Shown here one piece after another: positions 9,312 through 57,206 of a stretch of 64,000 nt of DNA. Source of the stretch: Eutreptiella sp. 'Long Island Sound 2002' (Eukaryota; Protista; Euglenida); NCBI GenBank assembly GCA_964036045.1, contig OZ038378.1, positions 181,164,001-181,228,000 on the forward strand, written 5' to 3'. Both the position numbers and the translations under genes were made by a program. Numbering within the stretch: position 1 is the first letter of the stretch; each line of letters opens with the position of its first letter. The notes under the pieces are model-generated. The model did not search any database. It was given only the letters and a program-made list of their open reading frames with translations, and was not told the origin of the DNA.

Positions 9312-9455
9312 TTAGTGCTGAATGCACCGCAAAACCAACAGCGAGAGCTCGTCATATGTCAAGTAATCGTGCCGCGTCATACCCATTTGCCGCCAGGCCG
9401 CATTTGCAGATGTAAATATATCGTCGCCAATCACTGCGAACTCCGCATAGTACTC
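9312..9455 (-). CDS. PAC-like gene exon 6 (last): second EF-hand-like motif and stop
   Basis: Acceptor CTTCTGTGCAG|GAG, phase 0; EYYAEFAVIGDDIFTSANAAWRQMGMTRHDYLTYDELSLLVLRCIQH-TAA completes a helix-loop-helix pair with exon 5. Confidence 0.8.
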   Translation of the reverse strand, partial: EYYAEFAVIGDDIFTSANAAWRQMGMTRHDYLTYDELSLLVLRCIQH

Positions 9456-9949
9456 CTGCACAGAAGCGGGTGTTCCGTCTCGCCCTTCCCCCTGCCCAGC
9501 TCCCTGATACCGAAGGCACGGGGCGCTCATTTCTGCCCCTTCCTCAGGAGGTGGTGTGGGGGAGGGTTCCAGCCAGATGGCGCACTACACAGCGAAACGG
9601 AAAGACAGAGCACATACGTCTGGCACCTCCCGACCTACACTCGAGAAGAAGCGAAGATGTGGCCCCTTTATCTCGCTCCTACGCACAGTACTATTGGCAA
9701 AAGAAAGGGGGACTGCTGACAACCCTCGGACCCCGTAATACGCTGTTTTGCACTGCGGCTCCCAGCCATCCAAATGGAGCCTCGCGACCCGCAACAGGCG
9801 TTTGGCGACCTCCCCCCTCCCACAGACGAATGCACAGAAGAACACGGTATCGTGGGATGTAACGTTCGTGTGAGTTGCCTCCTGACACCCGGATTGTCAT
9901 TGGCTTGCACCGACAGGTCCTCAGAGGTTGAAGCAAGAATTGATCGTCC

Positions 9950-10290
9950 GGCTGATGACGGCATTTACTCCGAGGGGGGTTCGATATCTGCACACATGCC
10001 TCATGAGTATCGATAAACAAACAATGCGGCTGAACTGATGGCTGCTCTATGCGCACTGCAGATTTTCACTTCGGGTGAAAATCTTCCCCGTGTGCACTGA
10101 TTCTCAATACATCATGTTAGGGGTGTCATGAGCGGCGCGCCGCTGGAAGATATGAGGCTAGACTGCCTCGGCGGGCCCCGTCTCTAAGGTCTCATCGTGA
10201 GAGCTAATGCTCGCTGACACCAATAAACCTGGTCGCACCATTCACTGGGTTCCCTGTTCGTGCTGAACAACCTGCATTCCCGCCGACCCT
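9950..10290 (+). pseudogene. Disrupted RNase H1-like domain, probably a retroelement relic, in intron 5
   Basis: Frame-shifted translation gives TNNAAELMAAL, CTDSQYIMLGV, ARRWK, AGPVS and TIHWVP, the E and D catalytic motifs of RNase HI; stops and frameshifts present. Confidence 0.65.
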
Positions 10291-11971
10291 CCATATCGGC
10301 AACCGAAGTGTGTACGAGACTGGCGCAAGCGGGCGAGAGGTGTCGCCACGCCTGTCTGTGCTCCAGGGGAGGAATAGAGGGTGTGTCCGGTGCGGCAGGC
10401 CTCTCCTACACCGCGCGCGGGGTGTGCTGGGTCGATCGCTGACAGCATCGAGATGACCCCCAATGTACCCCCGAGAGGGGCAGGGCCCTGAATCCATTGC
10501 AACTTCGGGGGGGAGGGCCCTCCAAGCCTGTTTCCCAAGCCTCCGCTATTAGGCTCTCGGGGCTGGGCCCCCCAAAGTGACCCCACACGCACATTCCAAG
10601 CGTCATACCCCAAATGCACAGTGCCCCCGCCCTTGGGGAAGGGTGTTGCACCCACCGGTTCAAACCACCTCCCCTCTAGTCAGGGGAGGGGGGCTGCCAC
10701 TTTTCGATGCACCCTAATCAGAAATGTTCTCAGAGGCTTTATAATGGTTGCGGGAGGCTTTTGGCCGCTTGCTGCTACCGGGGCCTCAAGCAGGTCACAA
10801 AGCGCACCACACATGCAAGTCCTCGTATGCATAGGCAGCCCTGTTCGGCAGTTCCAATGACATTCATGATAGAGCAATCCTTCCGGCTGTCACCGTCACC
10901 CGTGTTCTTGCTTTGAGCCTATTTTGTCAACACAAAATGTTTGCATCCTGAATTAAACAAAAGCACTCCTGGTTAGCAGGTCAGCTGATGCATTTTGCCT
11001 GTGGCTTATACAAGTCGATCAAGTGTCATGTCATGTCCCATTAGCCTTCAGAGGAACGTTGAGAGGAGAGTGCAGGGGGTCGTGGAACTGTGCAGGACCC
11101 TGGACAAGCCAGATAGAGGGGAACCACAGACGACTTGAGAAATCAGCAAAATACTTTTTTTAGGGGGAGGGGGGGTAAGGGGGGGGGGAATTTGGTATGT
11201 GCCAAATGTGGAATGGCGAAACTTGGCGCAGATAAAATTTGGCACCCATTTCTGAAATAACAGTGAAAAATCTGGTACAAAACTCCTGGACTATGGCACA
11301 ACAAGCATAGACTGTGAATGGTGATTGTTATTTTCTACGTGCCTTTGATTAGCAGTCATTTCCTGGAGGCTTTTGGATGCTTGGTGGCTCCTACAGACAT
11401 ATTGCAGCGGCTCTAATCAGCCTGCTAAAGAGGTCTTGAGAGTACCATGCTTTTGCCCTCACCCAACCCTTGCAGGACATCAATCATGGAAATCTTACAG
11501 CTCGGCCCTTCGAGCCTGTTTCCTACACCCCCACCTCCATTATTCGGACAGGCTTGGAGTGTCCGCGGCGGTGTGCATTGGCAGGGAGGGCACGGAGGTA
11601 GGACAGGAAGAGCGGTTGGGGTACCGCTGCCCACCACCCACACCCACCACACGCACTACACAAAGAGACTTTTTCATGCACAAAACAGAAGCGCGAGGAG
11701 GAAAACTGAGAAAAACTCTCCAGAACAGATGCTTCAGAGTACAGGGGATGAGCAGCAGCTGGCAGTACACAAGCAAAGCAGAGTAAAGAGCAGCCCTACC
11801 AAACACATACATACAGCCGGCGGGAAGCAAAATCCACACAGCTCACAGTCAGCGATTGGTGCTCTGGGCCCACTGCAACTTGGGTTCACCCAATTCATCC
11901 CTCTCCATCACGAGCACCTTTGGTGCGACGTCTCACTGACATCGCCCAAACTCCTACGCAAACACACATAC

Positions 11972-12463
11972 CGCCAAGCGAGTCATACTGACGTATCCGT
12001 CTCCATCGGGGTCCAGCTGGGCCCATAGCTCCTTCAGCTCCGCCTGAGTGTGCGGGAGCCGCATGGTGCGTGGGAGCGGCGCACCGACATCGTCCCGGTC
12101 GGGGCCGAAGTCCGGGATTTGGGTGGAGGGGGGCATGTCCAAGTGGTACGCGGGGGACTTGGTGTGCGTCGGGCAGTGCGTCTCCGTCACACGGAACTCG
12201 TCGGCCGGTGGGGGTGCGCCTGAGGCGGACGGCGGCACGGCCTTGAGGGGGGGCGTAGAGCCACGGCCACCGGACGCCCGCTTGGCGGCCCAGTACTGTT
12301 CAGGGCTGGGGCCCTCCAGCTTTTTCTCAGCGGCGGCCTGCAACATTGAGGGCGGGGGATGCTGAGGATGAGAGTGAGACGAAGACTGAGACTGTGGCTG
12401 GGGCGGGGGCGAGGGCAAGGGCGAGGGCTCGGACTCATGCTGCACATCGGCACGGACCAGGGT
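11972..12463 (-). CDS. PAC-like gene exon 5: Pro/Ser-rich linker and first EF-hand loop
   Basis: Acceptor CCCCATCCCAG|ACC (alternative in-frame CAG|CAT at 12439); ELKELWAQLDPDGDGYVSMTRLA then donor GCG|GTATGT. Confidence 0.75.
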
Positions 12464-13414
12464 CTGGGATGGGGAGTGTGGAGGATGGTGTGGGGGTCTG
12501 GGGGGGGAGGGGGGGGCAGGGATGCGTTAGAATGAAAAGGACCTCAGAGGTGGTCATGGAGGCGGTGGGACAGGCGGTTGGAGGAGGTTGCCAAAGCGGT
12601 TGAGGGCGGTTACTGTTGGTTACAAATGCCACGCAAGCTGGCACTTGGCGTCAGGTGGACAGTGGCTGGGCATATGCTGGGCGCCCTGCAGTGGGGGGGG
12701 GGGGGTTATCTTCCCCCCTTCCAATGCATCTCTGGGGGGGGGGGGGACAAGGGCATATGGGCCGCACACAGGTCAACAAGCGCTCCACATACGCACGTCC
12801 TGGTACGCATGTGCAGCAATGTTCGGCACTTCTCAAGTATATTTGTGTTCTTCACCACCTCACCATATGTGCACTTGGTAGACCGCTTATGTGTTCTTGT
12901 GGCTGCCGTGGTTTGTCGACCACCACAGCTGGTCTGCATCTGAACTACAGTTCCACCCATTTGACCTTGCACAGGGCTGGCACTCAGGGGCATATGGGGA
13001 AAGGCGCGGGTTCCCGTCAGGTAGGACAGGTGCGGGTGGCAGACGAACGTTGTGGACGGGACCTCTAGAGGCTGAGCTTGTCCACAAGTCATCTGCCAAG
13101 AGCGTCAGGAAGGGCGTCATTCAGAGGCATAGGACTGCGGCACATTGATCGTGGGGCCTGGCCCCTCCAGAGCGCCTTCACTCAGGGGGTGCATAGACCT
13201 TGGCTCCCCGCCCCGGAAACAAAGCACGGCTGTCAGGGGGGGGAGGGGGGGAGGGTTGCGCCATTACGGCTGCAGGAGTATGCCGGTTGGTACTCCCGGG
13301 CGTAGATACCTGTGCGCCTTTTGAGGAGGGAATCCTGATTGCAAATGTCGTGCACGCTCTACTCTCTGCTTCTCATGTCCGAGGGGGGGAGGGGCTCCCT
13401 TAAGACGGGCATAC

Positions 13415-13779
13415 CCTGTCCTTGGCGGCTTGCGTATCCTCCATCAGCCACGCCGTCCAGAAGTTCTCCACAAGGAGGTCCAGCGTCTGCGGCACGACAT
13501 ACGGGTCCCGGTCCCCGGGGGCAAACAGCTTCACGCTCTCACTCTCCACTTGGCCACTGCGCCCGACCCCCAGTCGGTGGGTCCCGCAGCGGCGGAGGTC
13601 CGCGGCGATGGGCTGCGGGAGCGTGGCCGCCACGTCTTCGGTGATGAGGACGCCGGCCCCCAGGGGCACACAGTACTCCAGCGTCCAGTTGGCCAGGGTC
13701 AGCCCCCCCCCCACGAGGGTGTAGTTGGCCCGGGTGTCGAAGCGGACATTCCCAGCGACGAAGTTGGAGGCCACGACGG
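13415..13779 (-). CDS. PAC-like gene exon 4: C-terminal half of cyclase-homology domain
   Basis: Acceptor CTGCAG|CC (phase 1), donor AGG|GTATGC; FVAGNVRFDTRANYTLVGGGLTLANWTLEYCVPLGAGVLITEDV matches the class III pattern vvaGniG..r..YTviGd.vNlAsRle......ilise. Confidence 0.85.
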
Positions 13780-14019
13780 CTGCAGTGTGATGTCAAGTGA
13801 TCGGTTGGAAGGCTACGGACGTGGGCCCCATTCTTCCCCATCATTTCCCGTCCTCGTGGCGATGGGAGGGGCACCAACGGCGATGCTAACCCCCTAACCG
13901 CCGGTCAACAGGTCACAGACACCTGCCCCCCCTCCCTCTGCCCCCGGTCGTTCCCTCTGCTCCAGCATCAGGCTCTACCCCAGCCCTGCCTCTAAACCCC
14001 AGCCCCGTGCCTGCTTGCC

Positions 14020-15070
14020 AGGGAAGTATTAGAGGGGGGGGAGGGGGGGGGGGGGTCTGGAACCCAAAAGCTTGTGTACCAAAAATGGCCCGACAAGATT
14101 TGCCCTGTTTTTAATTTCGTTTTTTCCCACTATGGTCACTTTGGTCGGGGGGGGGGGGTTAAAAGGGGGGGGGGGGGGTTGGCAAAAGGCCTCGGTATTA
14201 GGTTGTTTGCCTTTGGCGGTGCCTATTGGCCTCTTGCCACTGCTCATTCTGACCCTCTGTGGGTCCGAACGTGTTTTGGTTGTGTCAACGGAGCCCCTGG
14301 ATGACTTGTCCTGTTTGACTACTCCAGGGTGAGCTGTCCCGGGGACGGGCTGTTGCCCGTGCCGTTGACCAGGTGCATCCAGATGCACACTCCGAGTCTA
14401 TGCTGGGTTTGCCGGCCCCAGCACTGACTTGTGTGCGCTGGGGTGTGCATCTGCAGAATAATTTTCCTGACAGGGGCTTCTAACAACCACAATGATTCTT
14501 TCCCTCTTGTCCTTTCCTTCTCCTCCTTCTGCGCTCTGCACCGTTTTCGGCGAGCGCGGTCTGCCCTGTCCTGTTACCCTCCTTGGTTCGCCCCTTTCCC
14601 CCTGCCCAGTTTCTTCCCGGCCCTCTCCATTCTTTCTGCCCTGGGGGGCATTGGGTGGCGGGGGTGCGTGTTGTTGTAGGGAGGGGGTAGAGGAGGGGGC
14701 AGGGGAGGGGGAGTGGGAGTGGGTTCGTCGCACCCTGCCCCCTCCTTTCCCTTGAGGGGGAAGATCCTGGCTCAAGGGGGCTCCTTGTTGGTGTCAGTGT
14801 GCTTGGTGTGGGTGGTTTTGGCCACTTGCTTCTGCTGGCCCACATATCCCAGTCTGTCCTGGGCATAGTTGCATGCTGTTTGCTGGCATGATGGCCTTAG
14901 CTGGCGCGGCGGTGGTAGACCATGCACGTAGCGCCCGCCGTCAGTCTAAGGGTTCAAGACCGGGGCTAATCCCCCTTTGTACGCGTCCCCGCAGTTGGGG
15001 AGAGGGAGGAGTCCGCGGCCTCCCCCCCCTTCCCTGTAAAGAGTCTGTTGGCTCATCACCCAGGGTCCTC
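14020..15070. repeat. ~1-kb composite repeat, copy 1 (MITE-like head plus body), intron 3
   Basis: Near-identical to 15823-16840 (GGTCTGGAACCCAAAAGCTTGTGTACCAAAAATGGCCC...GGCAAAAGGCCTCGGTATTAGG...CCTGTAAAGAGTCTGTTGGC). Confidence 0.85.
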
Positions 15071-15301
15071 GGGTAAAAGGGGGGGGGACCCCGCCGTTCC
15101 TGTGGTGTACGGCCATTGTAATACTTCCCTGCTGTATGCCTGCACCCTGCGCGGAGCCCGGCCCATTCCCCATGCCCATGCTCATGCCCAACCCGCGCCA
15201 CCAGTCTGTAATGGGCAACGATGGGGACCCTCCCACCGCCATCGGTTCCCCCCAACCGGCGGGCCCGTGATCCCTATGGAGCAGCCCACGCACGCGACGA
15301 C

Positions 15302-15653
15302 CTGCGGTGGCGTACAGCAAACGGCCCACATCCCGCTGCTTTGAAGCTTCACGTACCCCATCGATGCGGCGCACGGCGGCGCATGCGGCGGCGAAGGCGA
15401 CCTCGCTCCGCTCCCCCGGGAATGTGGCGTACAGGGTGGTGCCGCGCACGCCCCACACTTCGCCGCCGCTTTGGTCGATCCCCTCCATCACGTTGTGCGT
15501 GAACAGGTTGATGAGCCGCGTCAAGTCGTCGCGGTTCTGGGCGTCGGTCCGGCGGCGGGGCATGCCCCGCATGATGGTGTCGAAGCCCAGCATGCCCACC
15601 GCGACCACGAAATTCGACGTGGGGCAGGGCTCCAAGAACACCGGGTTGTACCC
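15302..15653 (-). CDS. PAC-like gene exon 3: N-terminal half of cyclase-homology domain
   Basis: Acceptor CGTCAG|GGG, donor GCAG|GTCGTC (phase 1); VVAVGMLGFDTI and IDQSGGEVWGVRGTTLYATFP align to fxDIxGFt and i...gG.vdKfiGDaimavf; about 88% GC3 by hand count. Confidence 0.85.
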
Positions 15654-15822
15654 CTGACGCGTGACCGGGCGGTGCAGTTGTTATGGGTGAGTGTGGGATC
15701 TCTACACAACGGGAATTCTCAGGAATGTATACAGAAGAGGATCTACACATCAGCGCGCTTCTCTGAGGCTTCTCTGAACAAACTGCCAAAAAGCTGAAAC
15801 CAAGGCGTGGGCCAGGCTGAGG

Positions 15823-16840
15823 CAGAGATGCATTAGAAGAGAGGGGGTAGGGGTGGCGAGGGTCTGGAACCCAAAAGCTTGTGTACCAAAAATGGCCCAA
15901 ATCAATATTTCCTTTTGTAATTTCACTTTTTCCCACTATGAAATCTGGGTCCGGGGGGGCCGGGGGGTGGCAAAAGGCCTCGGTATTAGGTTGTTTGCCT
16001 TTGGCGGTGCCTATTGGCCTCTTGCCACTGCTCATTCTGACCCTCTGTGGGTCCGAACGTGTTTTGGTTGTGTCAACGGAGCCCCTGGATGACTTGTCCT
16101 GTTTGACTACTCCAGGGTGAGCTGTCCCGGGGACGGGCTGTTGCCCGTGCCGTTGACCAGGTGCATCCAGATGCACACTCCGAGTCTATGCTGGGTTTGC
16201 CGGCCCCAGCACTGACTTGTGCGCGCTGGGGTGTGCATCTGCAGAATAATTTTCCTGACAGGGGCTTCCAACAACCACAATGATTCTTTCCCTCTTGTCC
16301 TTTCCTTCTCCTCCTTCTGTGCTCTAAACCGTTTTCGGCGAGCGCGGTCTGCCCTGTCCTGTTATCTCCCCCTCCTCGCCCCTTTCCCCCTGCCCAGTTT
16401 CTTCCCGGCCCTCTCCATTCTTTCTGCCCTGGGGGCATTGTGTAGCGGGGGAGCGTGTTGCTGTGGGGAGGGAGTAGCGGAGGGGGAGGGGTAGTGGGAG
16501 CGGGAGTGGGTTCGTCGCACCCTGTCCCCTCCTTTCCCTTGAGGGGGAAGATCCTGGCTCAAGGGGGCTCCTTGTTGGTGTCAGTGTGCTGCGTGTTGGT
16601 GGTTTTGGCCACTTGCTTCTGCTGGCCCACATATCCCAGTCTGTCCTGGGCGTAGTTGCATGCTGTTTGCTGGCATGATGGCCTTAGCTAGCGCGGCGGT
16701 GGTAGACCATGCACGTAGCGCCCGGCGTCAGTCTAAGGGCTCGGGACCGCGACTAGTTCCCCTTACGCGTTGGGGCGAGGGAGGAGTCCGCGGCCTCCCC
16801 CACGAACCCCTGTAAAGAGTCTGTTGGCACATCACCCAAG
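15823..16840. repeat. ~1-kb composite repeat, copy 2, intron 2
   Basis: Direct repeat of 14020-15070; begins with CAGAGATGCATTAGAAG, a CAG(G/A)GA-type terminus also seen inverted near 12720-12737. Confidence 0.85.
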
Positions 16841-18858
16841 GCCCGCGGTGCCCCCGGCATCTTATTTGGGCTGTGCTGGGCTGTGCTGGGCTGCCGTGTA
16901 TTGTTGTTGCATGGGTGTACGCGTTCTGCCATTGTTGGAGTTGGTGGTGCTACGGCGTCGGCGGAGTTGTAGGGGTAGTCACTGGGCCATTGTGGCGGGG
17001 GGAGGGGGGGGGAGGTCTGTCCATTCCGAGTGGTGTCAGCAATGCAGCTGGTGATGTGGTTATGCCCGGGGGGGGGGGGGGGGGACACAGGGGGCTACCC
17101 CCCCCTCCTCCTACGGTTGTCAGCCGTTCTAATACATAATACATCCTTGGGCCGAGGCGTTGACTTGAGGCTTGCATGTGCGGGCGAGGCTGCACTGATG
17201 CCCCATCCTCATTACCCCCCCTCCCCATTGCCCTCCCTCCCACACACCTTCTGCGCATCCCCTACATTCCAATGGGGTCCTCGGCCTCATCGTGGGGTGC
17301 CGGTGAACCCAGAAGCCTGCTACCGACACACCATCCGGGGCTAACAGAGGAGGAGTTGGACCCATTTCGCTGCAACTGGCCCATTGGCAGCCACACACCA
17401 CAGTGGTGGCCCCGTCAACAGTAGGCAGGGCCAAGCCACCCCCCCCCCCCCGCAGCCCCTAAACTCCAGCTCACACGCCTGCTCAATAGGTCCGCGCAGC
17501 AGGCAACACCGGTATCGAGAACAGACACACGATACACGATAAAGGGAAGCGAAAGGGGCAACACCAACACCGAGAACAGACACGCATTAGCAGCTGGGGC
17601 CACACACACCATGGGAGGGTACAGAGCAAACACTGGGTGCACAACACAGGTAGCTCATCCGGACCGGGAACGCGACGACCAACGACAACCGACGCCCATA
17701 AGTGCCAGGTATACGGTGCCAAGGCGAGAACCCGCGCCCCCCCCAACGCAGTGCGCGACCACGTAACCCCCCATACAGAGTGGTAGCCCCAGGGTGTTAG
17801 CTAGGCGGCACACACACGTTGTCACTGCCACCGCACGGGGGGCGGGGCTCCGCGGCTAGCACCAATAAACTCCTCTAGGAGTGGAATGTGTGGGACCCTA
17901 CCCACACCCGCTGCCCCCCCTCCCCCGCCCGAACCTCGGCACCCCGCTGGGCATGAGCAGCCACGCCCCCAAGCCAGCAGTGGACAGGCCCGGGGTACCG
18001 CGGCCAACACACCCACACACCACAAGGTCCACTATGGCTGTGGTCCGGGGGCTGAGTGGCCAAGGAACCACCGGTGCCCTCAGTCCTGCAGGACACCGCA
18101 CAACCACCGCACTCCACGCACATAGGCGTCAAATCCCCATTTGTGCATGTATGCCTCTCAGGCTCCAGACCGCGGCTGTCGCACGTGCCTGTCAACACCA
18201 CTTTGGAGAGGCACCCAGGCCCCTTGCTTGTCTACAGCTTGCACCATGCCCGATCCCACGTTCAAATCCCTTTCCCCTATTGAGCAACGTGCTCGGCTTC
18301 GCCTGGCACAGGCTTTTCGAGCAACCAACGTGGTCTATTCCGAGGACAAGGAGCTGCTCCTCACAGGGCAGCACTAGAAATCGACAATCCTGGTCCAAGG
18401 CATTCCCATGAAGAACAATGCGCGGATGGCATCCGTCGCGCTCCGGTGGGCAGTACTCACCGACCAACTGCTATGTGGAGAACTGGACGCACGGCGAGAC
18501 CACTGCAAGGAGTACGACCTACCGCGATGCCTTGGACCGATTTCTATACCAGGTTGTTATGATGTCCCCGACCAAGCGGAACGACGTCATGCATGCAGCC
18601 CGACAACACTGTGAGGCCTAGGAGAACTCCACAATTGGCCGCCTCACCTTTGACGAGTTTGTGGAGGTCCTAGCCGGCACCATGTGTACCTAGCTTGTGC
18701 TCCTCTGTGTGCCGTTGCTACACTGGCTCACTTCGTGGGCTGCCCAGCAGAGTGACAGCGTGCTGGCCTGCCCTATGCCCCAATACGCCCTGCCAGCTGG
18801 AGCCAAGGAGACCGGGAAAATACCTGGGCCCAGCCCTTCAGGTAAGTGCGAGTGGGAA

Positions 18859-20199: not shown

Positions 20200-22045
20200 A
20201 AGCGACACCAGGGGTAGTGGGTCTCCCAATAATGGAAGCCTGATCCTCTTGTACTTGGTGGTCAGCCCCAGCAGTTTCGTGTGCGGTGTATTGAAATGGC
20301 AAATTTCCCTCTTGACCAGCCCCGAATGCTTACCCACTATCCGGATTCCCATTAGGCATTCGGGGACAACCGCGAAGCCAAAGCCCCGCGTGTCCCTCCG
20401 TCGAGGCCGCCCATTGACGCATGGGCGTGACCGCCGCGGAGTAGAGACAGCCCGTGGCTTACCATGCGATGCCCACCATCGCCGATGACTAGCCTTGCTC
20501 ACTCACCTCCCGCCCCAAGTCACACCCATGCATGCCATCACCTCCCTCCTGTGCACGATCTAGGCCCGTGCCGGTTGGACGCAGCTTTTGCGGCTCCTCG
20601 AAGACCTAGACTCCCTCTCGGCCCGCCACGCGGCGTTGGCCCTCGCGCGCCCGTCGTCCCCTTTTGCAGAAACCACTGACTTGCGTGCCCTGCTACACCC
20701 CATCGGGTTGACTATGCACACGGCTCCCGAAGAGGCTTTGCTCCCAGCCCTCATCCACACAGAAGGTCCCTGGATGGGTCCCCCCCCCGGCGACCCCCTG
20801 TACCTCAGCTCCGATGGTGCCCTCCAGGCAGGCGCTGTCTGGTCTGGCACCCACAAGATATCTTGCTCATGGGGACTTGTGCCCTTCTCACCTACGGCAG
20901 CACCCCCACGGATGCCGAGTGGCTAGGCATAACGGCTGCCCTGCTCACCGTTTTCGGCTGCAGCAACCCTCTCGTCAGAGTCGGCGATGCCACACACACC
21001 ACCTTCACCGCGTGGACCCCGGGCCCCCTTGAGCCCTCCAGGTTGTTGAGCGTCATCTTCCGCACCATGGCGCCTTGGCCGGTGACCGTGACCTTGCAAG
21101 AATTCCGGACACCAGCACAACACACAGGCCTGACAGCAGACGTCTTGTCTGACTTGAACGCTCAAGCCCATAGCACACCCCAGACCGATTTTTAGTACGC
21201 CAAGCCCTAGACCTACCCAGCTACAGCAACACTCCATGACATCATTGTCTTTATGCACCACAACCGTCTCGGCCGCCTTGTACTCAATCTGGTAGCGTCG
21301 TTCGACAGCATCTATACGGATACCGTCACTGCCCGGTTCTACTGAGGCGTAGGTCCGGCGCCCTCGTGGTGGTCAAGATCTGCTCTCGAAGAGCTCTTCT
21401 TGGGGGCGGCCCTCTCCGCCCGCACCGTCTTGTGCTCCATCCGCAATCGGTTGTACACGTGGGTGGTTGTCCCTCCAAAATCGGCACTGCAGTATGCTCA
21501 TACTGCTCCTACGCCTTCCACGGCCTGCCTCGCCATGAGGACTGGGAATGCCCAACCCTACCGCCGGCCCTCCTTTACCCTACTATTGCCGTATGGTGCG
21601 TGGGAGCAGGGGGTCTCAGCCCGCTAGGCACTCTAGGGGTCATTCGCGTCACAGCGCCACAACGGGCACTGTCCTCATCCATGATGGCGCTCCCTCGTGG
21701 GCACTGGGAGCGATGGCCCGACCCACACGTCCTTAGCCCCTCACCACTAGGGCCCGCCACTAGACTGTGCTTTCCATCGGAGGGCCGACCGCCAGTCCAC
21801 TCCCCCACCTAAGCAGCCTAATTCCCTACGGCCACTTGTCCGAGTTGCCGTGTTCGCAGCCCCCGCAGCTCCAAAGCCACTCGACAACCTGATTGCCTCC
21901 ATTCGTGCTTCACTAGCTCGCCGCCATCTTGCATGGGACCCCATCACCAAAGTGCCGAACAGTTTTGCAAACGTTCGCCCGGGGATGGCCCTAAGCGTTG
22001 AAGATTCCTTGGTGCTAACTTATGTTATGCGGGCGACCCGCTAGT
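20200..22045 (+). mobile_element. Degenerate LINE 3' portion (RNase H-like domain and CCHC finger), a family distinct from the 44-60 kb one
   Basis: LYLSSDGALQAG / TPTDAEWLGITAAL / VRVGD (D-E-D triad across a frameshift) and CSYC....H..W.CP; many TAG stops. Confidence 0.55.
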
Positions 22046-22476
22046 GCCCAGAGGGAGGAGCACAGCACAGGGCGGGGCACTGCCGGGGGGGGGGGGGGGG
22101 CACCACGCACAGCACGGCCCCCATCTCCCACATAACGGAACTCCACCGCCTAGATGCCGAGGGTGGGGAGGACCGACGTGAAAAACATAAGTCGTGTAAA
22201 AAAAATAGTCTAGTCGTGTAATTTTTTTTGCGGTAAGGACGTGTAATTTTTTCTTGCGTTAAGTCGTGAAGATTATAAAAAAGAAAATGAAAAATTGAAA
22301 GAAATGCACGTTTTGCAATACATGCGCAATATGTACAGCTGCCGGTTCCATACGGCATCCCGTTGCGACCTTCACGGTGGGACACCAAGTCCACAAAGCA
22401 CATAGTACTCCGCGTGGCCACCAATTAGTTGGGACCCGGGCAAGATAACATATTTTCACATGGTGTCAGTGTCATT

Positions 22477-23215
22477 GGCACTAGACACAAAATAAGGCCC
22501 AAGAAAAGACACCTGATAGGGCCATGGCCAACATCCAGTGTGGCAGCACTGGGAACAAAATCACGCTCAAGAAAAAGAGTCCTGGCGGGGCCATGGCCGA
22601 CGCTAGTGCCACCATTGCCTGCGTCAAAGGGGGGTCTGGATGGATGCAGACCTCGTAGTGCGCGTGGGCCCAAGGGGGGGGGGCCTCTTGAGGTGCCCGA
22701 TGCCCGTCGCCCCCCGGACCCCTCTGGCTACCACAGCCCCCGTGGTCGTCGGCAGGCGGCCCCGCGTGCGTGGACCGGGTGTTCTGAAAACCGCTGAGAG
22801 TAAGACTGAGCGGAATGACGCTGCAAATCTGTTGTTCGAGTCCGTCGGTAAAGAGTTGAATGGCCTGCGTGCTGCGCGGCGCATCCGAGGGCTGCAACCA
22901 GGGCTGTCCCCAAGGGCCAATGTTTTGTGTTTTGTTTTTTTTCATCGCGGCACTCTGACCTCCCGGCAAACTTTTACACGCGGTTATGCACCACCATTAT
23001 AGGCCACCAAGGCGGTAGTATGGGGCCAATATAACATAGTTTCACAAGGTGGCATGGGCACTAGACACAAAATAAGGCCCAAGAAAAGACACCTGACAAG
23101 GCCATGGCCAACATCCACTGTGCCATAACTGGAAACAAAATCAGGCTCAAGAAAAAGAGTCCTGACAGGGCCATGGCCAACACTAGTGCCACCATTATAA
23201 GCCACCAAGGCACTG
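22477..23215. repeat. Two ~145-bp direct repeats (22477-22620 and 23057-23215)
   Basis: GGCACTAGACACAAAATAAGGCCCAAGAAAAGACACCTGA...CTCAAGAAAAAGAGTCCTG...CTAGTGCCACCATT in both. Confidence 0.8.
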
Positions 23216-23814
23216 GCATGGGGCCAATATAATAGCAACATTATACGCTCCGATATTGGTACACCAAACGGGCGGAGGAAAATACAGCCCACCCAAAATG
23301 CACCCACTACAAGTAGTTGTAGAATGCATGCTTGTAGATCAAGTCCGGTTTTGCGTCGCTGGACTTGAGCTTTGCACCAGAATTGGGGTGAAACTGACAA
23401 GCGGCGTGCAACTCGGCTACTAACTGCTTGGACAGGCCATTGATGAAAAGCTGGTCACGCTCCAGCTTGCCATATGCATCTGCTGTGTAGCCACTCTCCC
23501 CGGATGAGGACCTTGGGACGGGTGTCCTCCTCTATGGGAGTGGCCATGGAAGGTTGCAACCTGGCCTCCGGGCTTTCCATACTCTGCTCGGCGGAGGCCT
23601 CCTTGCCTTCAAGTGGGGTGGGGGTGGCCTGAACACTCTCCTCGATAGCCGAAAGTGCACCTTCAACTTGGGTGATGGGGGAGGACTCAGGAGGGCAAGG
23701 AAGCTCGGTCACACCCTCCAAATCATCAGCAGGCGCTTCAACGACCCGCACAGCACAATCAGCATTAACGATGCTGAGCACATAGTCCAGAAAACCAGGA
23801 CCCATTGGATCACA

Positions 23815-24238
23815 AGTGGATGCCTCACCCCTACCTTCTCAGGGGCCCAAAAGAGGGCGGAAATGCTATGTCACCCCTGCATTCTCGGCGATCCCCAAAC
23901 AAAGGGGGACAAAATCAGAAGTGGTTGCCTCACCCCTGCCTTCTTGGGGGCCCAAAAGAGGGCGGAAATGCAACGGCACCCCTGCATTCTCGGGGATCCC
24001 CAAATAAAGGGGGACAAAATCAGAAGTGGCTACCTCACCCCTGCCTTCTCGGGGGCCCAAAAGAGCACGGAAATGCTATGTCACCGCTACATTCTCAGGG
24101 ATCCCCAAACAAAGGAGGACAAAATGAGAAGTGGCTACCTCACCCCTGCCTTCTCGGGGGCCCAAAAGAGGGCGGAAATGCTACGTCACCCCTGTATTCT
24201 CGGGGGTCCCCAACACCGAGCGCGGGGAAAACATCAGA
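23815..24238. repeat. 105-bp tandem repeat, 4 units; related sequence at 29090-29220
   Basis: Units start AGTGG at 23815, 23920, 24025 and 24130; contiguous, no unique spacers. Confidence 0.9.
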
Positions 24239-24299
24239 AGTGGCCCACAGGTGGGCACATCGCCTACAAGCATGCATTTTCAGTTAAATTGGTGCTTGT

Positions 24300-24610
24300 T
24301 TCTTTGCGGTAAGGTCGTGTAATTTTGTCATTTTTGCGGTAAACGCGTGTAGGAAAAAGTCATCACATCGTGGAATTTTTTTTGCAGCAAGTCGTGTATT
24401 TTTTTTTGCGGCAAATGCGTGTAACAAAAAAAAATCGTCACGTCGTGTATTTTTTTTTGCGGTAAACGAGTGTACAAAAAAATCGTCAAGTCGTGTAATT
24501 TCTTTTTGGCGTAATGCGTGTGACGGGCTTACACGACTTACCGCAAAAAAAAATTTACACGAATAGACGATTTTTTTGTTACACGCAATTACCGCAAAAA
24601 AAAAACACGG
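24300..24610. repeat. AT-rich foldback array of GTCGTGTAATTTTTTTGCGGTAA-type motifs; related block at 22180-22270
   Basis: Motif repeated forward in 24300-24520 and as reverse complement (TTACACGACTTACCGCAAAAAAAA) in 24527-24610. Confidence 0.7.
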
Positions 24611-25816
24611 ATTACAACATACACAGGACCCACGCACGCACTACACACAAGGAGCGTGAGGGGGTGATGGGCGGTAGTCCGGAGCCTCCAAGACCGTTGG
24701 GTGCTTACCATACCATACCATACTCCCACACACCTTCCCGCATACTGACCAAAGGCCGGCTAGACCAAAGGTGTGGCACTCAGGGGACACTACTTGGTAC
24801 CACACCCACCTTTGTGGAACAACCCCCTTCCCGAAAACACTGCAAGTGTGAGTATTCGGATAAGCATTTCAACCCCCCTCCGCCATCCCTCTGTTTCACT
24901 CCCTGCCATAACCTCAACAACCAGCCTTTTCGGGACCCCCCCCCCCCATCCCCAAGCCTTGGGACGGTGTTCGGTGGTTCCACAAGGAGAAGACGTCACC
25001 AAGCCTCAACTATGGGTCAACTGTGGCACGGTCCTTGAGCAGGGTCCTTTCAGGGGTCCTTTAAGGGGGTCCTTTAGGGGGGTCCTCCACAGGGATTCTT
25101 TAGGGTTGTCCTTTGGGGGGTCACGGGGTTGGTCTTTCACGGTGGTCCTTCAAGGGGATATTGTCATAGGGTGATTCAGCAAGGGTTTGTGACCTTTCAT
25201 GGGGTCCCTTGACAAAGGTCCTTTTTGAACTGCTTTGATCGGGGTGCATGGTGTTCCCTTTCCCACCAGCTCAGTCCTAGTATTCATTCCTGATTAGGGT
25301 TTGACCAAGCCATACCCTCACCCTACGTAAGCATCCCCCTCCCCTTCTTATCCCCTGCCCCCCAGAACAGACATCCCCCCCACTGCATTGAAACCGGAGA
25401 TGGTCTTGGGTTGGTTTCGGGGGGTCCTGTTAATTGAGCCCGTTTGCGGAGGATGAATGGGCCTCAAATGGTCAGGTTGCAGTGTCCGCATTAGGCTCTG
25501 GCCGCGCCTGCATCACAGCTGTCATCGCCTTCTGTCCATCCCACCGGTGTACAGCGCTGCCAAGTTCAGCCCTCGTCCCTGCGTCCGCTCTCCATACTGG
25601 CGCTCTGGGCTCTACAGGGTTATGCGTGCATCCAGGTCAACGGTCACTCCCTCCCCGTGCTACTGTGAATGCTGGCCCCACTGAGCCACACCAGGTTGGG
25701 CTTTTGGGTTTTTCAACCTAATGACCCAGCCACACCAGGTTGGACGGGTCATTAGGTTGAAAAACCCAGTGGCTACAGGTTTGATTAAAGTTAGTGTAAC
25801 ATTCAACATTCAACAT

Positions 25817-25996
25817 TCAAGGGGTGAAACAGCGCGATCCTTCCGTGCTGCATGACACTGTCGAAGCCGTGGAGGGGGAGTCCGGCGCCGGTGTGTCCGA
25901 GCGGGACCCCTGTAACGATGCTTCAAAAAACAGCTGTTGTTGGGTTGAGGGGGGTGCATCGCCCTCCATTGCCACCAGCTCCAGCGATGCCAGCAA
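25817..25996 (-). CDS. Candidate terminal exon or coding remnant, copy A (59 aa + TGA)
   Basis: CCTTGCAG|TTG acceptor, phase 0; same length and stop as copy B with mostly synonymous differences. Confidence 0.4.
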   Translation of the reverse strand: MLASLELVAMEGDAPPSTQQQLFFEASLQGSRSDTPAPDSPSTASTVSCSTEGSRCFTP

Positions 25997-26361
25997 CTGC
26001 AAGGACGCCTGCGGAGACAGGGGGGGCCTCAAATGGTCAGGTTGCAGTGTCCGCATTTGGCTCTGGCTGCGCCTGCCCCACAGCTGTCATCGCCATCTGT
26101 CCAATCTGCCAATGTTCGGCGGAGCCTCAGCTCGAGGTCTGTTCAGCAGTTCATCCCTCGTCCCTGTGTCCGCTCGCTGCATTCGCTTCCTGGGCTCTAC
26201 AGGGTTATGCGTGCATCCAGGTCAAAGGTCACTCCCTTCCCGTGGTGCTGCTGTAGCTGGCCCCATTCGGCCACACTAGGTCGGGCTTTGCTGGGGCCTT
26301 AGGTTGAAAAACCCAGTGGGTACAGGATCAGTTAAGGTCAAAGACATTCAACATTCAACAC

Positions 26362-26541
26362 TCAGGGGGTAAGGCATCGTGACCCTTCAGTGCTGCATGA
26401 CATCGTTGAAGCCGTGGAGGGGGAGCCCGGCGCGGATGCATCCGAGTGGGGCTCCTGTGACGAAGTCTCATAGTTCAGTTCCTTCCGGGGGGACAGGGGT
26501 TCTTCGCCCTCCATTGCCACCAGCTCCAACGATGCTAGCAG
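26362..26541 (-). CDS. Candidate terminal exon or coding remnant, copy B (59 aa + TGA)
   Basis: GTCCCTGCAG|CTG acceptor, phase 0, 345 nt downstream of the exon 2 donor. Confidence 0.4.
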   Translation of the reverse strand: MLASLELVAMEGEEPLSPRKELNYETSSQEPHSDASAPGSPSTASTMSCSTEGSRCLTP

Positions 26542-26679
26542 CTGCAGGGACACTCGGGGGGACATGGGTGACAGGGATTGTGGCGTGTGGAACGTGGTTC
26601 TCGCTGGTCCCACACGGTAGGGCGTGCTCGTTCGCCGGCTTGTGGCTGGCGTGGCCTCCGTGTGATTAGGCAACGGGCC

Positions 26680-26750
26680 GCGTTTTGGGGTTCGAACCGC
26701 CGACCACACGGATGCCGGTCGGCTGCGTTTCCACTCGGCCGCTACGTGGA
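26680..26750 (-). mobile_element. tRNA-derived (SINE-like) head with Pol III A and B boxes
   Basis: Minus strand reads TAGCGGCCGAGTGG (A box) ... GGTTCGAACCCC (B box); no convincing acceptor stem, so not called a tRNA. Confidence 0.55.
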
Positions 26751-26885
26751 GACAGGGGGGGGGGGGGGGGCTGCCCAGCCACGGGGCTCTATTGACCCCC
26801 CCCCCCACCCCGCTGAAGTGAAGGTCCGACCACCCTGGCTGGGGCAGACCAGCTTTCCCCACGCCCCGTAATGGCTGAGAAATAC

Positions 26886-27137
26886 CTGTGCGAGCGTAGA
26901 CCGGATATACGGTCGGCAGAAGCGCATCAAAACACGATACTTGCAGGCTAGCGTGTTGACCAAGTGGTGGCTGGGGCGCACATCGTCGGTCACTTCCATG
27001 CGGTAGCACCTGAACCCCAGCTTCTGTTGTCGCTCCGGCAGCACTGCATCCAGCACCACAGACACCAGGTCGTGGCGCGAGTCACTTTGAATGCGCTTGA
27101 AAGTTTCATGGACATAGGCCTTTGGGCCCTCTAGCAC
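26886..27137 (-). CDS. PAC-like gene exon 2: C-terminal half of BLUF domain plus helical linker
   Basis: Acceptor CGCTGTGCAG|GTG, donor CAG|GTATTT; VLEGPKAYVHETFKRIQSDSRHDLVSVV..ER....FRCYRM fits the BLUF consensus LEG....V..l..RI..D.RH..v......R.F..w.M. Confidence 0.9.
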
Positions 27138-28374
27138 CTGCACAGCGCAGGAGTGGGGTACAAGCACGGACAGCGAGGAGGTTGTGGATGGGTACCAAGG
27201 ATGCCATCCATCAGGAGCCCACCAGAAATAAGACCATTCCTCATAAATGAACACGAGCCTTCGGCGTGAGACGGCCGCCTTAAACACATCCATGCAACAG
27301 ATCAGTCACCCAAAGCACACCCACACAACAAGGTTGTTGCCCGTGAACTCGCCTATTGCACAATGCAATCCCAATGCAATAATTAATTATGGAACTGCGA
27401 TGGAATTATGGAACACACTAAGGAACACGGCATATCAAAGCATGGGATGGCACATGAATATATCATCCTGGGGGGGATGTTTGCCCGGCGCGCGCCCGGC
27501 TACCTTTGTATTAAGTATCCTAGCTCCAGCCTCAATTTTATCCTCACCTAGGGAAGTCCCCCAAGAAGACCGCACCGGACCGCAAACAAAGCACGTTGCA
27601 TAAGCCGAAATCTGAGAATTCAACAACACACAATGTCACTCAGAATGTCCTTAAATAATACCATTCCCAAGAGTGTGGGTGTCAATACATTCACAATAGT
27701 AGTGCTCCTTACACCCACCACATACTGTGATGGTGGAGCGCTTGTGACAATACAATGCACAAACTTCTGCCTCATCCTCTCCCTCATCTTCTGTGGCGGC
27801 CGAGTTGCTCTTGTCCGTCCAAACATGAGGTGGAACCAAGTAGGGCGGCCTGTTCAAATTCTATACCCCAACCGGGTGCGAAAACTTTTGGGGGTCTGGA
27901 GGGGGGGGGGGGGGGATTGGGGGGGCGGGTTGGCGCCGGGGGGAGTGCCGGGGGGGGGGGGGGTTCCCAAGGGTATAAAGGGGCGGGGGGATCAAGCACC
28001 TCCGAACAGTTGGGTATGCGGCCCAAGTAGCCTGACTCACGCACCGCCCCTAGCCAAATGGATAGGGTGTCATCGGCTTGGGTATTTCCGGCAATGGGTA
28101 CCAGAAACCTCAGGGGCGGGGTCCCGAGGCGGTCATGGGGTGAGGTGCACAACATGGGGTTCGCGATACACAAGGGAGTGGGGCGTTCGGGGGTGAGGTG
28201 TACAACATGGGGTTCGTGGTATACAAAGGAGTGAGAAAAGGTACGAATTTTGAAGCCAAATTTTGGTTGTTCAAAGAACAGGGAAGGTTGCTTCCCTAAC
28301 GCTGGCATGCTTCCTTGTCACAACGTCACCAACATCTGGGGGCACGAATTCCGAACCTGACGTGCCGCTGGTGT

Positions 28375-28430
28375 TGCTGCTACTGCTGCTGCTGCTACTG
28401 CTGCTACTGCTGCTACTACTGTTGTTGCTA
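28375..28430. repeat. (CTG/CTA)n microsatellite
   Basis: Direct reading. Confidence 0.9.
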
Positions 28431-30293
28431 CCGCCATCGATGGTGGCTGGCACATGTGATGAGGCGGTAATTTCCGGCACATGGATAGGGACAGGATCTG
28501 TACGGCCCGCCTTGTGAGCACGCGAGAAGGCAGCAAGGACGGCAGCCCATTCCTCTACTGAAATCAAAGGTGCGGGAGGCCCCATGGGGTGACCTTCCCA
28601 GATATGGTCCGCCAAAACATGGGAGCAAACCCACTTGCCACACGTGCGCGCAAGGCATTTCATCGGCACATGGGTGTAGGGATTTGTCTTGGAGCCCTTT
28701 TGCGCACGGGTGACACTCAGCTGCTCATGTGCAAGCGGGCAAAATTGCTGGATGGGCAATTGTTCCCGATCCGCCCACCTGTGTCCTTTCAAGAAATGCC
28801 CTGCCACATGCAACCAATACTACAGTACTCCCAAAATCCCCAATGCGAATTGAACATTTTGAGTATACACACATAGGGGTGTTGAGTAATTCTAGTGCAT
28901 GCCGCATGCCCGCAAAAAAATTTTCGGCGCCTGCGGAACCGCCCATTTTGCCCAAAATCTCAATTTGGAGAAAGACGGGTTCGAAAACTTTAGGGGGTCC
29001 GGGGGGGGGGGGGGGGTCGGGAATGAGAACAGGCCGCCCCCCTCGGGCGGAACATGGTTCCATGGCTACATCACTTGGGCGGACTGGCTCCATAACCCCA
29101 CCCTTCTCGGGGGTCCCCAATAAAAGGGGACAAAATCAACAGTGGCTACATCACCCCTGTCTTCTCGGGGGTTCCCAATAGAAAGGGGCAAATTCAGAAT
29201 CACCCCTGCATTCTTGGGCTGATAGTTTGGTGAGGGGGGGGGGGGGGGGGGACAGGCACGGGTGGGGAATGGTCAAAAAAAGATGTGCAGAGCGCTCCCG
29301 GCGCGCTGATACTCCCCCCTGATTTGCCTTTCCTTCATTCATGTGTTGTCTTGTTCTGTCCCATGCTTTGAAGTGCTGTGCTGCTTAGTGTGTTCCATAC
29401 TTGACCAGCAAATACCTGATCCCTGAACTGCGAATTCAAGATGGATAGTATTGCGCCAAAGTGGTGCTTCCAAATGGAGCCATATCTTTTGCACAACGAT
29501 TGGAACATAAACACATGCAAATGGGTAAAGAAGAGGTGTGAGAAGGAGAAATCAGGAGGAGGAACAGGAGGACTTTACAAGATCCCTCTGCATCCGCTCT
29601 GGTAATAATAGTATTCTCATTAGCTGAGACCCTCCCAAAAAAAGCACGTGGACCTAGAATTGGCCTCGAATATCAGGCCTTTCTAGTACGTTTTACATTT
29701 CATAGTTCTTGGATGTGGGTGGGTGGGTTGGCCCATTTAGCCCCTGCAACCCCACCCTCATGCCCGTTGTTCACACATATGACGGTACATACAGTGGGGA
29801 GGTGATCCATACCTTCTGTGGGCCGGCTCTGCGACGCACCAGCTCCCCATCTGACCCCAACTACCCCTGCAAACCGCAATTACAACAGAAGTGCACGCTC
29901 CGTTTTGCCAAACACGTCTGACCGCCTTCCTAACTGCTGCTAATACCCAGCTCTGCCCGCCCCCTTCGCACGGGGTAGACCCGCCCTGAAGCAGAAGCCT
30001 CGACTGGCTTACACCAGAGCCCAAGCTAGAACACAAGAACGACCACAACAACAACGATCAGGGGCGAATTGGCAGTGGCGAATGGTGTGCGAAACAGATC
30101 CCTAGGAGTGACGGGTCAATGAGTGATGACAACGTTGAGTGTTGGGATAGTGGGCCCAAGAAGCCCCCAAATTAATACGGCCACTGGAGGGCAGGCAAGC
30201 ATGTTTCTTTGGTAGGCTTCAATCAGAGACAATTGGGGACAATCAGAGACAATCAGAGACAATCAATCAGAGAAAACCAGGAATAGGCAGCAC

Positions 30294-30470
30294 CTGCAAT
30301 ACTGCATCCTCTGTCATCCACATCTGGCTACCCACTTGAAGTGCAGAGTTGCTTTTTGTCCAGAACACCTCAAAATCTTGCCATTCACGGGGCGTCGGTC
30401 GTGGGGCCACCCAACGTGACACGTACACGAGCACATGCAAAGCATCCCCATCAGAGGAAGCAGCAGTCAT
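30294..30470 (-). CDS. PAC-like gene exon 1: start codon and N-terminal half of BLUF domain
   Basis: MTAASSDGDALHVLVYVSR...TKSNSALQVGSQMWMTEDAVLQ; YxS motif and the 18-residue Asn-to-Gln spacing of BLUF domains; donor CAG|GTGCTG. The ATG at 30470 is inferred (frame is open further upstream). Confidence 0.85.
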
Positions 30471-57185: not shown

Positions 57186-57206
57186 AACCGCAAAAGGGGG
57201 AGAGCT

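Follow-up and report, generated by a model that had tools for sequence, protein, structure and literature searches.

A six-exon gene on the minus strand

The window analysed here, a 64-kb stretch of genomic DNA from Eutreptiella sp. 'Long Island Sound 2002', carries on its minus strand a gene of six exons. Exon 1 (30294..30470; amino acids 1-59) begins with the ATG at 30470 and encodes the first half of a BLUF domain, including Tyr16, Asn41 and, as its last codon, Gln59, and is followed by a donor GT at 30293-30292. Downstream of intron 1 (27138..30293; 3.2 kb, GT..AG), exon 2 (26886..27137; amino acids 60-143) contributes the second half of the BLUF domain (LEGP.., DSRH) and an alpha3 linker helix, in which both dimerising leucines, L118 and L122, are present. 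The repeat-filled intron 2 (15654..26885; 11.2 kb, GT..AG) leads to exon 3 (15302..15653; amino acids 144-260 plus one nucleotide), encoding a GYNP handle and the N-terminal half of a cyclase-homology domain with G163 at the metal Asp position, G211 at the Lys position and T215 at the second metal Asp position. Intron 3 (13780..15301; 1.5 kb, GT..AG) holds a very high-copy repeat, and exon 4 (13415..13779; amino acids 261-382) completes the cyclase-homology domain, with T281 and a conserved GGGLTLANW in which T288 and W292 occupy the Asn and Arg positions, before running into an aromatic helix. In its favoured form, intron 4 extends over 12338..13414 (GT..AG; alternative in-frame acceptors at 12439 and 12463), so that exon 5 (11972..12337) encodes amino acids 383-504 of a 551-aa product, comprising a conserved KKLEGPSPEQYW motif, a low-complexity Pro/Ala linker and EF-hand 1 (loop D491-R502). 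Intron 5 (9456..11971; 2.5 kb, GT..AG) separates it from exon 6 (9312..9455), which supplies the exit helix of EF-hand 1, a degenerate EF-hand 2 (loop G529-E540) and, in all, the final 47 amino acids and the stop codon.

Rebuilding this model from the raw sequence gave GT..AG borders for all five introns, matching phases (0, 0, 1, 0, 0) and no internal stop, leaving about 1.66 kb of open reading across six exons with canonical splice sites. The minus-strand exon chain proposed in the initial annotation was thereby confirmed, with exact outer coordinates and with both of the internal borders it had named (26886 and 15653) placed to the nucleotide. Its length of 593 aa depends on the 12463 acceptor, one of three in-frame AG acceptors of exon 5; the other two, 12439 and 12337, yield 585 and 551 aa, respectively. 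Because homology to both relatives described below picks up again exactly at 12340/12337 and a spliced RNA contig fits only 12337, 551 aa is the likely product; the 34 amino acids upstream of this acceptor have no counterpart in either relative. The proline-rich linker noted earlier likewise survives in part, as the low-complexity Pro/Ala segment of exon 5, while its remainder falls in the region added by the disfavoured acceptor. Altogether, these data and the homology below confirm a real, intact and spliced nuclear gene, far beyond what chance would produce.

Two candidate features around the exons were rejected. An apparent tandem 1.79-kb duplication around exon 3 had only a 0.8-kb high-copy element in common, with no second copy of exon 3 in the window by tblastn, and an extra exon between exons 5 and 6 is at odds with the relatives, which align gap-free at this junction. 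Ten further long ORFs of the 64-kb window gave no match in a Pfam scan, and a search of the window for the dinoflagellate and euglenid spliced leaders found neither, with zero Rfam matches.

Collinear transcripts from two other euglenids

An exhaustive HMMER search identified just two relatives, P0002 and P0003, both of which are full-length transcripts, collinear with the model over all five junctions at 37-39% identity. Since both transcripts begin with (A)TTTTTTTTCG, which we take to be the 3' end of the euglenid spliced leader, the family appears to be euglenid-specific, with P0002 and P0003 presumably derived from two other euglenids. When P0002 and P0003 were compared with the window by tblastn, exons 1 to 5 were recovered in order on the minus strand at E 1e-7 to 3e-21 (exon 1, 8e-7 and 1e-8; exon 2, 2e-13 and 4e-16; exon 3, 1e-20; exon 4, 1e-20 and 3e-21). 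When 1830 six-frame pieces of the window were searched against a profile built from the C-termini of the relatives, exon 6 ranked top with E 0.0055, ahead of a runner-up at 4.3. For the predicted joins of exon 2 to exon 3 and of exon 5 to exon 6, collinearity with the relatives' transcripts is the single line of support. Protein searches by word matching, run with the exon-3 ORF or exon 3 alone, returned the window's own ORF or nothing, and no transcript-derived fragment; a profile search with alignment A2 returned P0003 alone, with low-complexity words swamping the output, and scans of metagenome contigs with exon 3 or the P0002-P0003 alignment revealed no relative.

RNA support from this organism is sparse. 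Read mapping spanned 6 kb over exons 3-6, using two estuary metatranscriptomes (X1 and X2), with coverage too low to yield a list of joints, and one run of genomic DNA (X3). Depth was very low in both RNA libraries (0.3-1.8). Words of exon 2 were recovered completely in X2 (100%) and to 61% in X1, and those of exon 3 to 82% in X1 and 39% in X2. One X2 contig (record 10) matches 13414-13628 without mismatch and departs from the genome exactly at the exon-4 donor; its remaining 31 nucleotides explain in full the depth of 0.34 recorded for the bin 12180-12379 at the start of exon 5. Neither of these two thin libraries showed any of the joins between exons 1 and 2, 2 and 3, 3 and 4, or 5 and 6. 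A unique intron bin (9580-9779) also showed a depth of 0.53.

The BLUF core is kept while the beta5 switch is missing

Exon 2 alone matched Pfam BLUF (PF04940) at 34.6 bits (E 2e-8; cut-off 25), and the two relatives reached 54.7 and 47.1 bits, with matches covering positions 1-87 of the 92 in the profile, in agreement with the BLUF domain first proposed here; exon 1 aligns to the N-terminal halves of the relatives' BLUF domains. Y16, Q59 and N41 align to Y6, Q48 and N30 of OaPAC, so that the photochemical Tyr-Gln-Asn core is kept. The same holds for L118 and L122 of alpha3, which correspond to the two leucines holding the OaPAC dimer together. Roles of OaPAC Y6, Q48, L111 and L115 have been described (PMC13740344). 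In the beta5 strand, OaPAC M92 is replaced by F101 in this protein and by Leu in both relatives, and W90 falls into a gap. Because equivalents of W90 and M92 are absent and the W90-M92 switch is seen as pivotal to signal transfer in current work (PMC13740344), light coupling may differ from that of OaPAC or be lost.

A PAC-like scaffold with a degenerate cyclase site

The family profile matched OaPAC (E 4e-20) and bPAC (E 1e-18) in one continuous stretch, positions 8-348, covering BLUF, linker and cyclase. Structures were modelled for the relative P0003; the input alignment was very shallow, and pLDDT for the whole protein was 59. Using Foldseek, this model matched OaPAC and bPAC at E 1e-20 and each of the Euglena PAC units F1-C1 (residues 46-397) and F2-C2 (461-860) at E 1e-17, and the nearest ESM Atlas clusters were bacterial BLUF-cyclases. 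Profile and fold thus bear out the PAC-like order of BLUF, linker and cyclase recognised in the initial annotation. The model also matched the cyclase-only construct of bPAC (5MBG; E 1e-10, TM by target 0.71), Ma1120, Cya2 and many Swiss-Prot cyclases.

OaPAC (PDB 4YUS, 5X4T) and bPAC (PDB 5M27) show the same order of BLUF, alpha3 coiled-coil helix, handle (GTNP in OaPAC, GYNP in this protein) and class III cyclase fold, and the BLUF Tyr, Gln and Asn as well as the alpha3 leucines are common to all. In contrast, identity to them is only 16-20%, the protein lacks the beta5 Trp and Met, other residues stand at five of the six catalytic positions, and approximately 180 extra C-terminal residues form a low-complexity linker and an EF-hand-like pair. 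In addition, the gene described here is eukaryotic, with five spliceosomal introns. The PAC alpha and beta subunits of Euglena gracilis and E. longa (Q8S9F2, Q8S9F1, Q76L33) share the euglenid lineage, but comprise two BLUF-cyclase units, make cAMP and have no EF-hand tail, whereas this family has one unit with a dead site.

In OaPAC numbering, the replaced catalytic positions mostly carry identical residues in all three proteins. In the order this protein, P0002 and P0003, the metal Asp D156 is replaced by G/R/R (G163 here), the purine-contacting Lys K196 by G/G/G (G211), the second metal Asp D200 by T/A/T (T215), the transition-state Asn N273 by T/T/T (T288) and the transition-state Arg R277 by W/W/W (W292). 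T281, at the position of the purine-recognising T266 of OaPAC, is the sole catalytic residue kept and is present in two of the three proteins. Pfam Guanylate_cyc (PF00211) matched neither exons 3 and 4 at E <= 1 nor the full-length relatives at E <= 0.1. Nevertheless, conservation peaks in the cyclase-homology domain, at 42-43% identity compared to 38-40% for BLUF. The profile alignment to OaPAC thus upholds the pseudo-cyclase assignment made earlier, and the residues predict a dead enzyme under selection, from which cAMP synthesis would be absent.

Class III cyclase domains work as dimers; mammalian C1-C2 and Euglena PAC C1-C2 are well-known examples of asymmetric pairing, in which one of the two sites is degenerate. 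The dead domain could pair with a competent cyclase, PAC alpha/beta or another class III enzyme, and so inhibit, localise or modulate cAMP synthesis in a light-dependent manner. Such a regulatory subunit would fit the well-known asymmetric class III dimers, the retained alpha3 leucines that form the dimer, the high conservation of the cyclase-like domain and a fold close to that of the Euglena PAC units. We nonetheless consider it unlikely: as the metal-binding set and the Lys/Asn/Arg set are both missing, no heterodimeric active site could be completed, and the 64-kb window holds no PAC gene or partner.

An EF-hand-like tail with eroded ligand positions

An AF2 model of the P0003 tail, its last 86 residues, takes the fold of an EF-hand pair (pLDDT 79), with the elements H-E-H-H-E-H, that is, helix-loop-strand-helix twice. 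EF-hand pairs made up all of the top 50 Foldseek matches of this tail, at a middling E of 0.07, and VIA Z reached 7.6 over 71-79 of the 86 residues, again middling as it stays below 8. With model, Foldseek and VIA in agreement, the EF-hand pair of the initial annotation holds as a fold, and we predict two paired helix-loop-helix motifs with moderate confidence. The activation domains of CDPKs, the lobes of calmodulin and the EF-hand pairs of S100 proteins share this fold with the 86-residue P0003 model, but the Ca2+-ligand positions are largely lost in the family and sequence-level matches remained below threshold. Pfam EF-hand_1 (PF00036) scored 16.5 bits (E 0.006; cut-off 25.4) and EF-hand_7 (PF13499) 14.5 bits (cut-off 30), the relatives matched no Pfam EF-hand profile, and CaBP1 reached only E 0.06 against the family profile.

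The initial annotation had raised the possibility that blue-light and Ca2+ signals converge in this protein, which would call for EF-hands that work as Ca2+ sensors. Loop 1, DPDGDGYVSMTR, is indeed canonical at positions 1, 3, 5, 6, 8 and 9, which together with the weak EF-hand_1 match and the fold of the tail speaks for this reading. However, its position 12 is Arg rather than the bidentate Glu, loop 2, GMTRHDYLTYDE, is non-canonical with Gly, Thr and His instead of ligands at positions 1, 3 and 5, and all Pfam EF-hand scores lie under the curated cut-offs. In P0002 and P0003, nearly all ligands of both loops are lost; because Gly, Arg, Gln or Lys stand at these positions, Ca2+ binding is not conserved across the family. 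Ca2+ sensing is thus not supported, and its integration with blue light seems rather improbable.

A candidate non-catalytic blue-light receptor

Together, sequence and models make it probable that the family represents a euglenid BLUF pseudo-cyclase of about 551 aa, derived from a single PAC-type unit, equipped with an EF-hand-like tail and devoted to non-catalytic light signalling. A literature search found no paper on a BLUF domain combined with a pseudo-cyclase and an EF-hand tail, consistent with the earlier suggestion that this architecture is undescribed. Signalling without catalysis is the most likely output, and blue-light signals are probably passed on via binding partners rather than cAMP. 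In such a scheme, the protein would bind flavin and form a PAC-like parallel dimer, blue light would switch the BLUF hydrogen-bond network, and the change would be relayed in PAC fashion via alpha3 into the cyclase-like domain. No cAMP would be produced; instead, the light-dependent conformation would alter binding by the pseudo-cyclase dimer and the EF-hand-like tail. The partner could be a second protein, or binding could be intramolecular, to the aromatic helix that follows the cyclase-like domain.

This putative working principle resembles that of E. coli BluF (YcgF), in which a BLUF sensor sits on an enzyme fold lacking catalysis and signals via light-dependent protein binding. The likeness to this BLUF protein with a degenerate EAL domain lies in the working principle only: E. 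coli BluF has an EAL output fold instead of a class III cyclase, is bacterial, has no EF-hand-like tail and is homologous in BLUF alone, in line with its weaker fold match via the BLUF part (P75990; E 8e-9).

Conservation extends to the substituted positions (GGG-x-T-L-x-x-W, R-G-T/A-T), a hint that a pocket has been retained, and Thr281 is kept at the purine-recognising position in two of three proteins. On this basis one might envisage catalysis at a non-canonical site, by a nucleotidyl cyclase that is still active or by some other enzyme that converts nucleotides. This is very unlikely, as both metal Asp residues are gone (G/R/R, T/A/T) along with Lys, Asn and Arg, Pfam Guanylate_cyc fails to recognise the domain, and we know of no class III cyclase that is active without both Asp. 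Decay into a pseudogene, or a fortuitous series of ORFs within repeats, as the very long repeat-filled introns, the thin RNA and a public record holding only prokaryote-style ORF calls here might suggest, is hardly credible given the open frame over six canonically spliced exons, collinear homology up to E 3e-21, the same substitutions in expressed transcripts of two other euglenids and the spliced RNA contig.

Among euglenid photoreceptors PAC is the classic example, and optogenetics makes heavy use of it; to our knowledge, every PAC described so far is an enzyme. The BLUF pseudo-cyclase would represent a PAC-type unit that lost catalysis, yet remained under selection in three or more euglenid lineages, and gained an EF-hand-like tail. 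This points to another output for the BLUF-cyclase scaffold, light-controlled binding instead of second-messenger synthesis, and provides a concrete second BLUF candidate for euglenid photobiology. As a long shot, the family could be a second, non-enzymatic euglenid blue-light receptor, with partners from the flagellum or from signalling pathways binding to its remodelled pocket (GGG-x-T-L-x-x-W) and its EF-hand-like lobe. PAC knock-down has been reported to leave some blue-light responses, such as the step-down photophobic response; if the conjecture held, the protein would be a candidate receptor for these surviving responses and a natural template for light-controlled protein binding. The family has been invisible so far because domain scans detect only its BLUF part and because the gene spans 21 kb of repeat-rich DNA here.

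A six-exon gene with two full-length relatives

The gene model was rebuilt from the raw window sequence on the minus strand, placing exon 1 at 30470..30294, exon 2 at 27137..26886, exon 3 at 15653..15302, exon 4 at 13779..13415 and exon 6 at 9455..9312, with the 3' border of exon 5 at 11972 and its 5' border at one of three acceptors. All five introns are bounded by GT..AG, the phases are compatible and internal stops are absent. Thus, the six minus-strand exons proposed in the initial annotation, joined at GT-AG sites in matching phase into an open frame, were confirmed, and its outer coordinates and two named borders (26886 and 15653) were recovered exactly.

An exhaustive HMMER search with exon 3 over 1.84 billion cluster representatives revealed only two real relatives, P0002 (546 aa; a complete ORF on a 1832-nt Logan contig from run ERR11260148) and P0003 (563 aa; from an MMETSP transcript). 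The remaining two hits, WD40 and RHS proteins, were noise. A 3084-nt JGI contig encodes a protein, P0006, that is 100% identical to P0003 over 563 residues and has 18 further residues at its N-terminus, and one of the two public relative contigs is a plain SRA run assembly. The transcripts of both relatives open with (A)TTTTTTTTCG, the T-rich ..TTTTTTCG end occupying positions 1-11 of contig L001 and 1-8 of contig L002, which we take to be the 3' end of the euglenid spliced leader. Its presence at the contig starts indicates that both are 5'-complete trans-spliced euglenid mRNAs. Neither the euglenid nor the dinoflagellate spliced leader was found in the 64-kb window. Judged by the transcript ends of the relatives, the genome itself most probably belongs to a euglenid, and, as far as the databases reach, the family looks restricted to euglenids.

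The spliced product is collinear with P0002 and P0003 at 37-39% identity, and the alignment is free of indels at four of the five junctions. Searching the window with the relatives by tblastn recovered exons 1 to 5 in order (E 1e-7 to 3e-21), while exon 6 ranked first among 1830 six-frame pieces compared with the relatives' C-terminal profile (E 0.0055; runner-up 4.3).

Choice of the exon 5 acceptor

Three in-frame AG acceptors are available for exon 5, at 12463, 12439 and 12337, yielding products of 593, 585 and 551 aa, respectively. The sole misfit of the 585-aa form to the relatives is a 34-aa insertion opening exon 5, and homology restarts at 12340, adjoining the 12337 acceptor. In two estuary metatranscriptomes, 82% and 39% of the sampled exon 3 words and 61% and 100% of the exon 2 words were present. 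When contigs were mapped to window positions 9380-15379, the RNA libraries proved very thin, and a further run was identified as genomic DNA at ~25x, collinear with the window. One contig of the second metatranscriptome (contig 10; 246 nt, depth 2.2) matched 13414-13628 with 0 mismatches and had 31 letters placed elsewhere, so that it departs from the genome at the exon 4 donor. Because this match extends one base beyond 13415, exon 5 must begin with G, which is true for 12337 and false for 12439 and 12463. The depths of this library agree with such a placement, as 31 x 2.2 / 200 = 0.34 is its exact depth in bin 12180-12379 and 166 x 2.2 / 200 = 1.83 its depth in bin 13380-13579. The join of exons 4 and 5 at 13415|12337 therefore has direct, if slender, RNA support, and the remaining joins are supported by homology. 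Hence, although the acceptor behind the 593-aa length originally proposed exists in frame, both the homology restart and the contig fit the 551-aa form.

The same library has a depth of 0.53 in the unique intron 5 bin 9580-9779, which could come from unspliced RNA, from carried-over DNA or from a transcribed element not yet recognised, and an argument from exon-only coverage can therefore not be made.

A retained BLUF core and a degenerate cyclase-homology domain

Pfam recognised BLUF in exon 2 (34.6 bits) and the full domain in both relatives, as the initial annotation had predicted, and no domain beyond BLUF in the exons or either relative. The PAC-like order of BLUF, linker and cyclase domain was likewise upheld, since the family profile matched the bacterial photoactivated adenylyl cyclases OaPAC (E 4e-20) and bPAC (E 1e-18) in a single stretch through BLUF, alpha3 linker and cyclase domain. 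In an AlphaFold model of P0003 (whole-protein pLDDT 59), means over 10-residue blocks were ~54-81 for BLUF; most of those for the cyclase-like domain fell in the range 60-89, and two loops were of low confidence. The model matched OaPAC/bPAC (E 1e-20), a cyclase-only bPAC construct (TM 0.71) and both F-C units of Euglena PAC alpha and beta (E 1e-17); the closest ESM Atlas clusters are bacterial BLUF-cyclases.

Key residues were read off the family-profile alignment to OaPAC. Tyr16, Gln59 and Asn41 of BLUF are retained (OaPAC Y6, Q48 and N30), as are alpha3 Leu118 and Leu122, which correspond to OaPAC L111 and L115, essential for dimerisation (PMC13740344). At the beta5 Met position the gene product has Phe101 and both relatives have Leu; the Trp of the W90-M92 switch, held pivotal for signalling (PMC13740344), is without counterpart.

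Five of the six catalytic positions are lost in the gene product, in line with the pseudo-cyclase originally suggested. OaPAC D156 is replaced by G (R in both relatives), K196 by G, N273 by T and R277 by W in all three proteins, and D200 by T in the gene product and P0003 and by A in P0002; T266 is kept in the gene product and P0003 and is A in P0002. Thus, for three of the five lost positions, the substitute residue (G, T and W) is the same in all three proteins and lies inside a conserved motif. The cyclase-like domain is nevertheless the best conserved part of the protein, with 42-43% identity; BLUF reaches 38-40% and the tail 24-29%. Judged from these alignments, it is probably a pseudo-enzyme maintained by selection rather than one in decay.

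An EF-hand-like tail with degenerate calcium loops

A model of the last 86 residues of P0003 (pLDDT 79), which drew on the relatives and on pieces from the window, predicts helix-loop-strand-helix, twice. All top-50 Foldseek hits were EF-hand pairs (probability mostly 0.6-0.99, E 0.07-0.3), and VIA-align gave Z up to 7.6 across 71-79 residues, the matches including CDPK activation domains, calmodulin lobes and EF-hand proteins of kinetoplastid axonemes. As these scores are middling for so small a domain, the model argues with moderate strength for an EF-hand-pair fold. Ca2+ loop 1 of the gene product departs from the canonical pattern at position 12, which is Arg; its loop 2 is non-canonical, and both loops lack ligands in P0002 and P0003. 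While the proposed EF-hand pair thus holds as a predicted fold, its loops are degenerate; Ca2+ sensing would accordingly not be shared by the family and is improbable in this protein, which argues against the suggested integration of blue light with Ca2+.

Proposed mechanism and novelty

The sequence and model data show the architecture, a photochemical core and dimer helix that are kept, the loss of the catalytic set and the EF-hand-like fold. We infer a flavin-binding, PAC-like dimer in which blue light would still move conformation via alpha3 into the cyclase-like domain, with binding instead of catalysis as output. Binding might occur through the remodelled pocket, the dimer surface or the EF-hand-like lobe; for the lobe, the docking site could be a partner or the conserved aromatic helix following the cyclase-like domain (..ENFW..W..). 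Speculatively, such docking would resemble CDPK activation domains clasping their own junction helix. In a variant, the gene product could pair with a true cyclase unit and act as its regulator. An output by binding has a precedent in principle in E. coli BluF/YcgF, in which a BLUF sensor is joined to a degenerate EAL domain.

Full-text literature searches turned up neither a described BLUF pseudo-cyclase nor a described BLUF-cyclase-EF-hand protein, and the only BLUF proteins mentioned in the Euglena gracilis transcriptome paper are ones whose cyclase domain is recognisable (PMC6366073). Homologous transcripts are already in public data, unannotated.

Repeats and other sequence in the window

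Exon 3 is flanked by two copies of a ~0.8-kb element in the same orientation, at 14165-14943 (intron 3) and 15953-16730 (intron 2), which are 99% and 94% identical and whose ORFs have a common N-terminal sequence opening MHLDAPGQRHGQQ. Its word depth of up to ~570,000 in the 25x DNA run indicates tens of thousands of genome copies. Another repeat of very high copy number is found at 12380-12979, in intron 4 shortly before exon 5; its depth reaches up to ~175,000 in the same run, and it is abundant in the metatranscriptomes too, so that it is either transcribed or a contaminant. At 23809-24213, also in intron 2, a 105-nt unit is repeated 3.9 times in tandem (89% matches) inside a plus-strand ORF of 252 aa whose peptide is repetitive, and a related 58-nt repeat is found in intron 1 (29085-29196). 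Two 225-nt direct repeats on the gene's strand in intron 2 (25799-26023 and 26344-26568; 78% identical, 545 nt apart) are both open-reading, with the common peptide ..SLQLLASLELVAMEG.., and have no counterpart in the relatives. A block of 65-68% G+C at 52000-60000 has very long ORFs on both strands, including minus-strand ORFs of 1006 aa (54431-57451) and 746 aa (57600-59840); the long ORFs of this block gave no Pfam hits and may result from base composition or represent an unknown gene or element. A trinucleotide microsatellite at ~28370-28430 in intron 1 is read as poly-Leu or poly-Ser in overlapping ORFs, and runs of 11-13 G or C are frequent across the region, leading to many PPPP/GGGG stretches in ORF translations.
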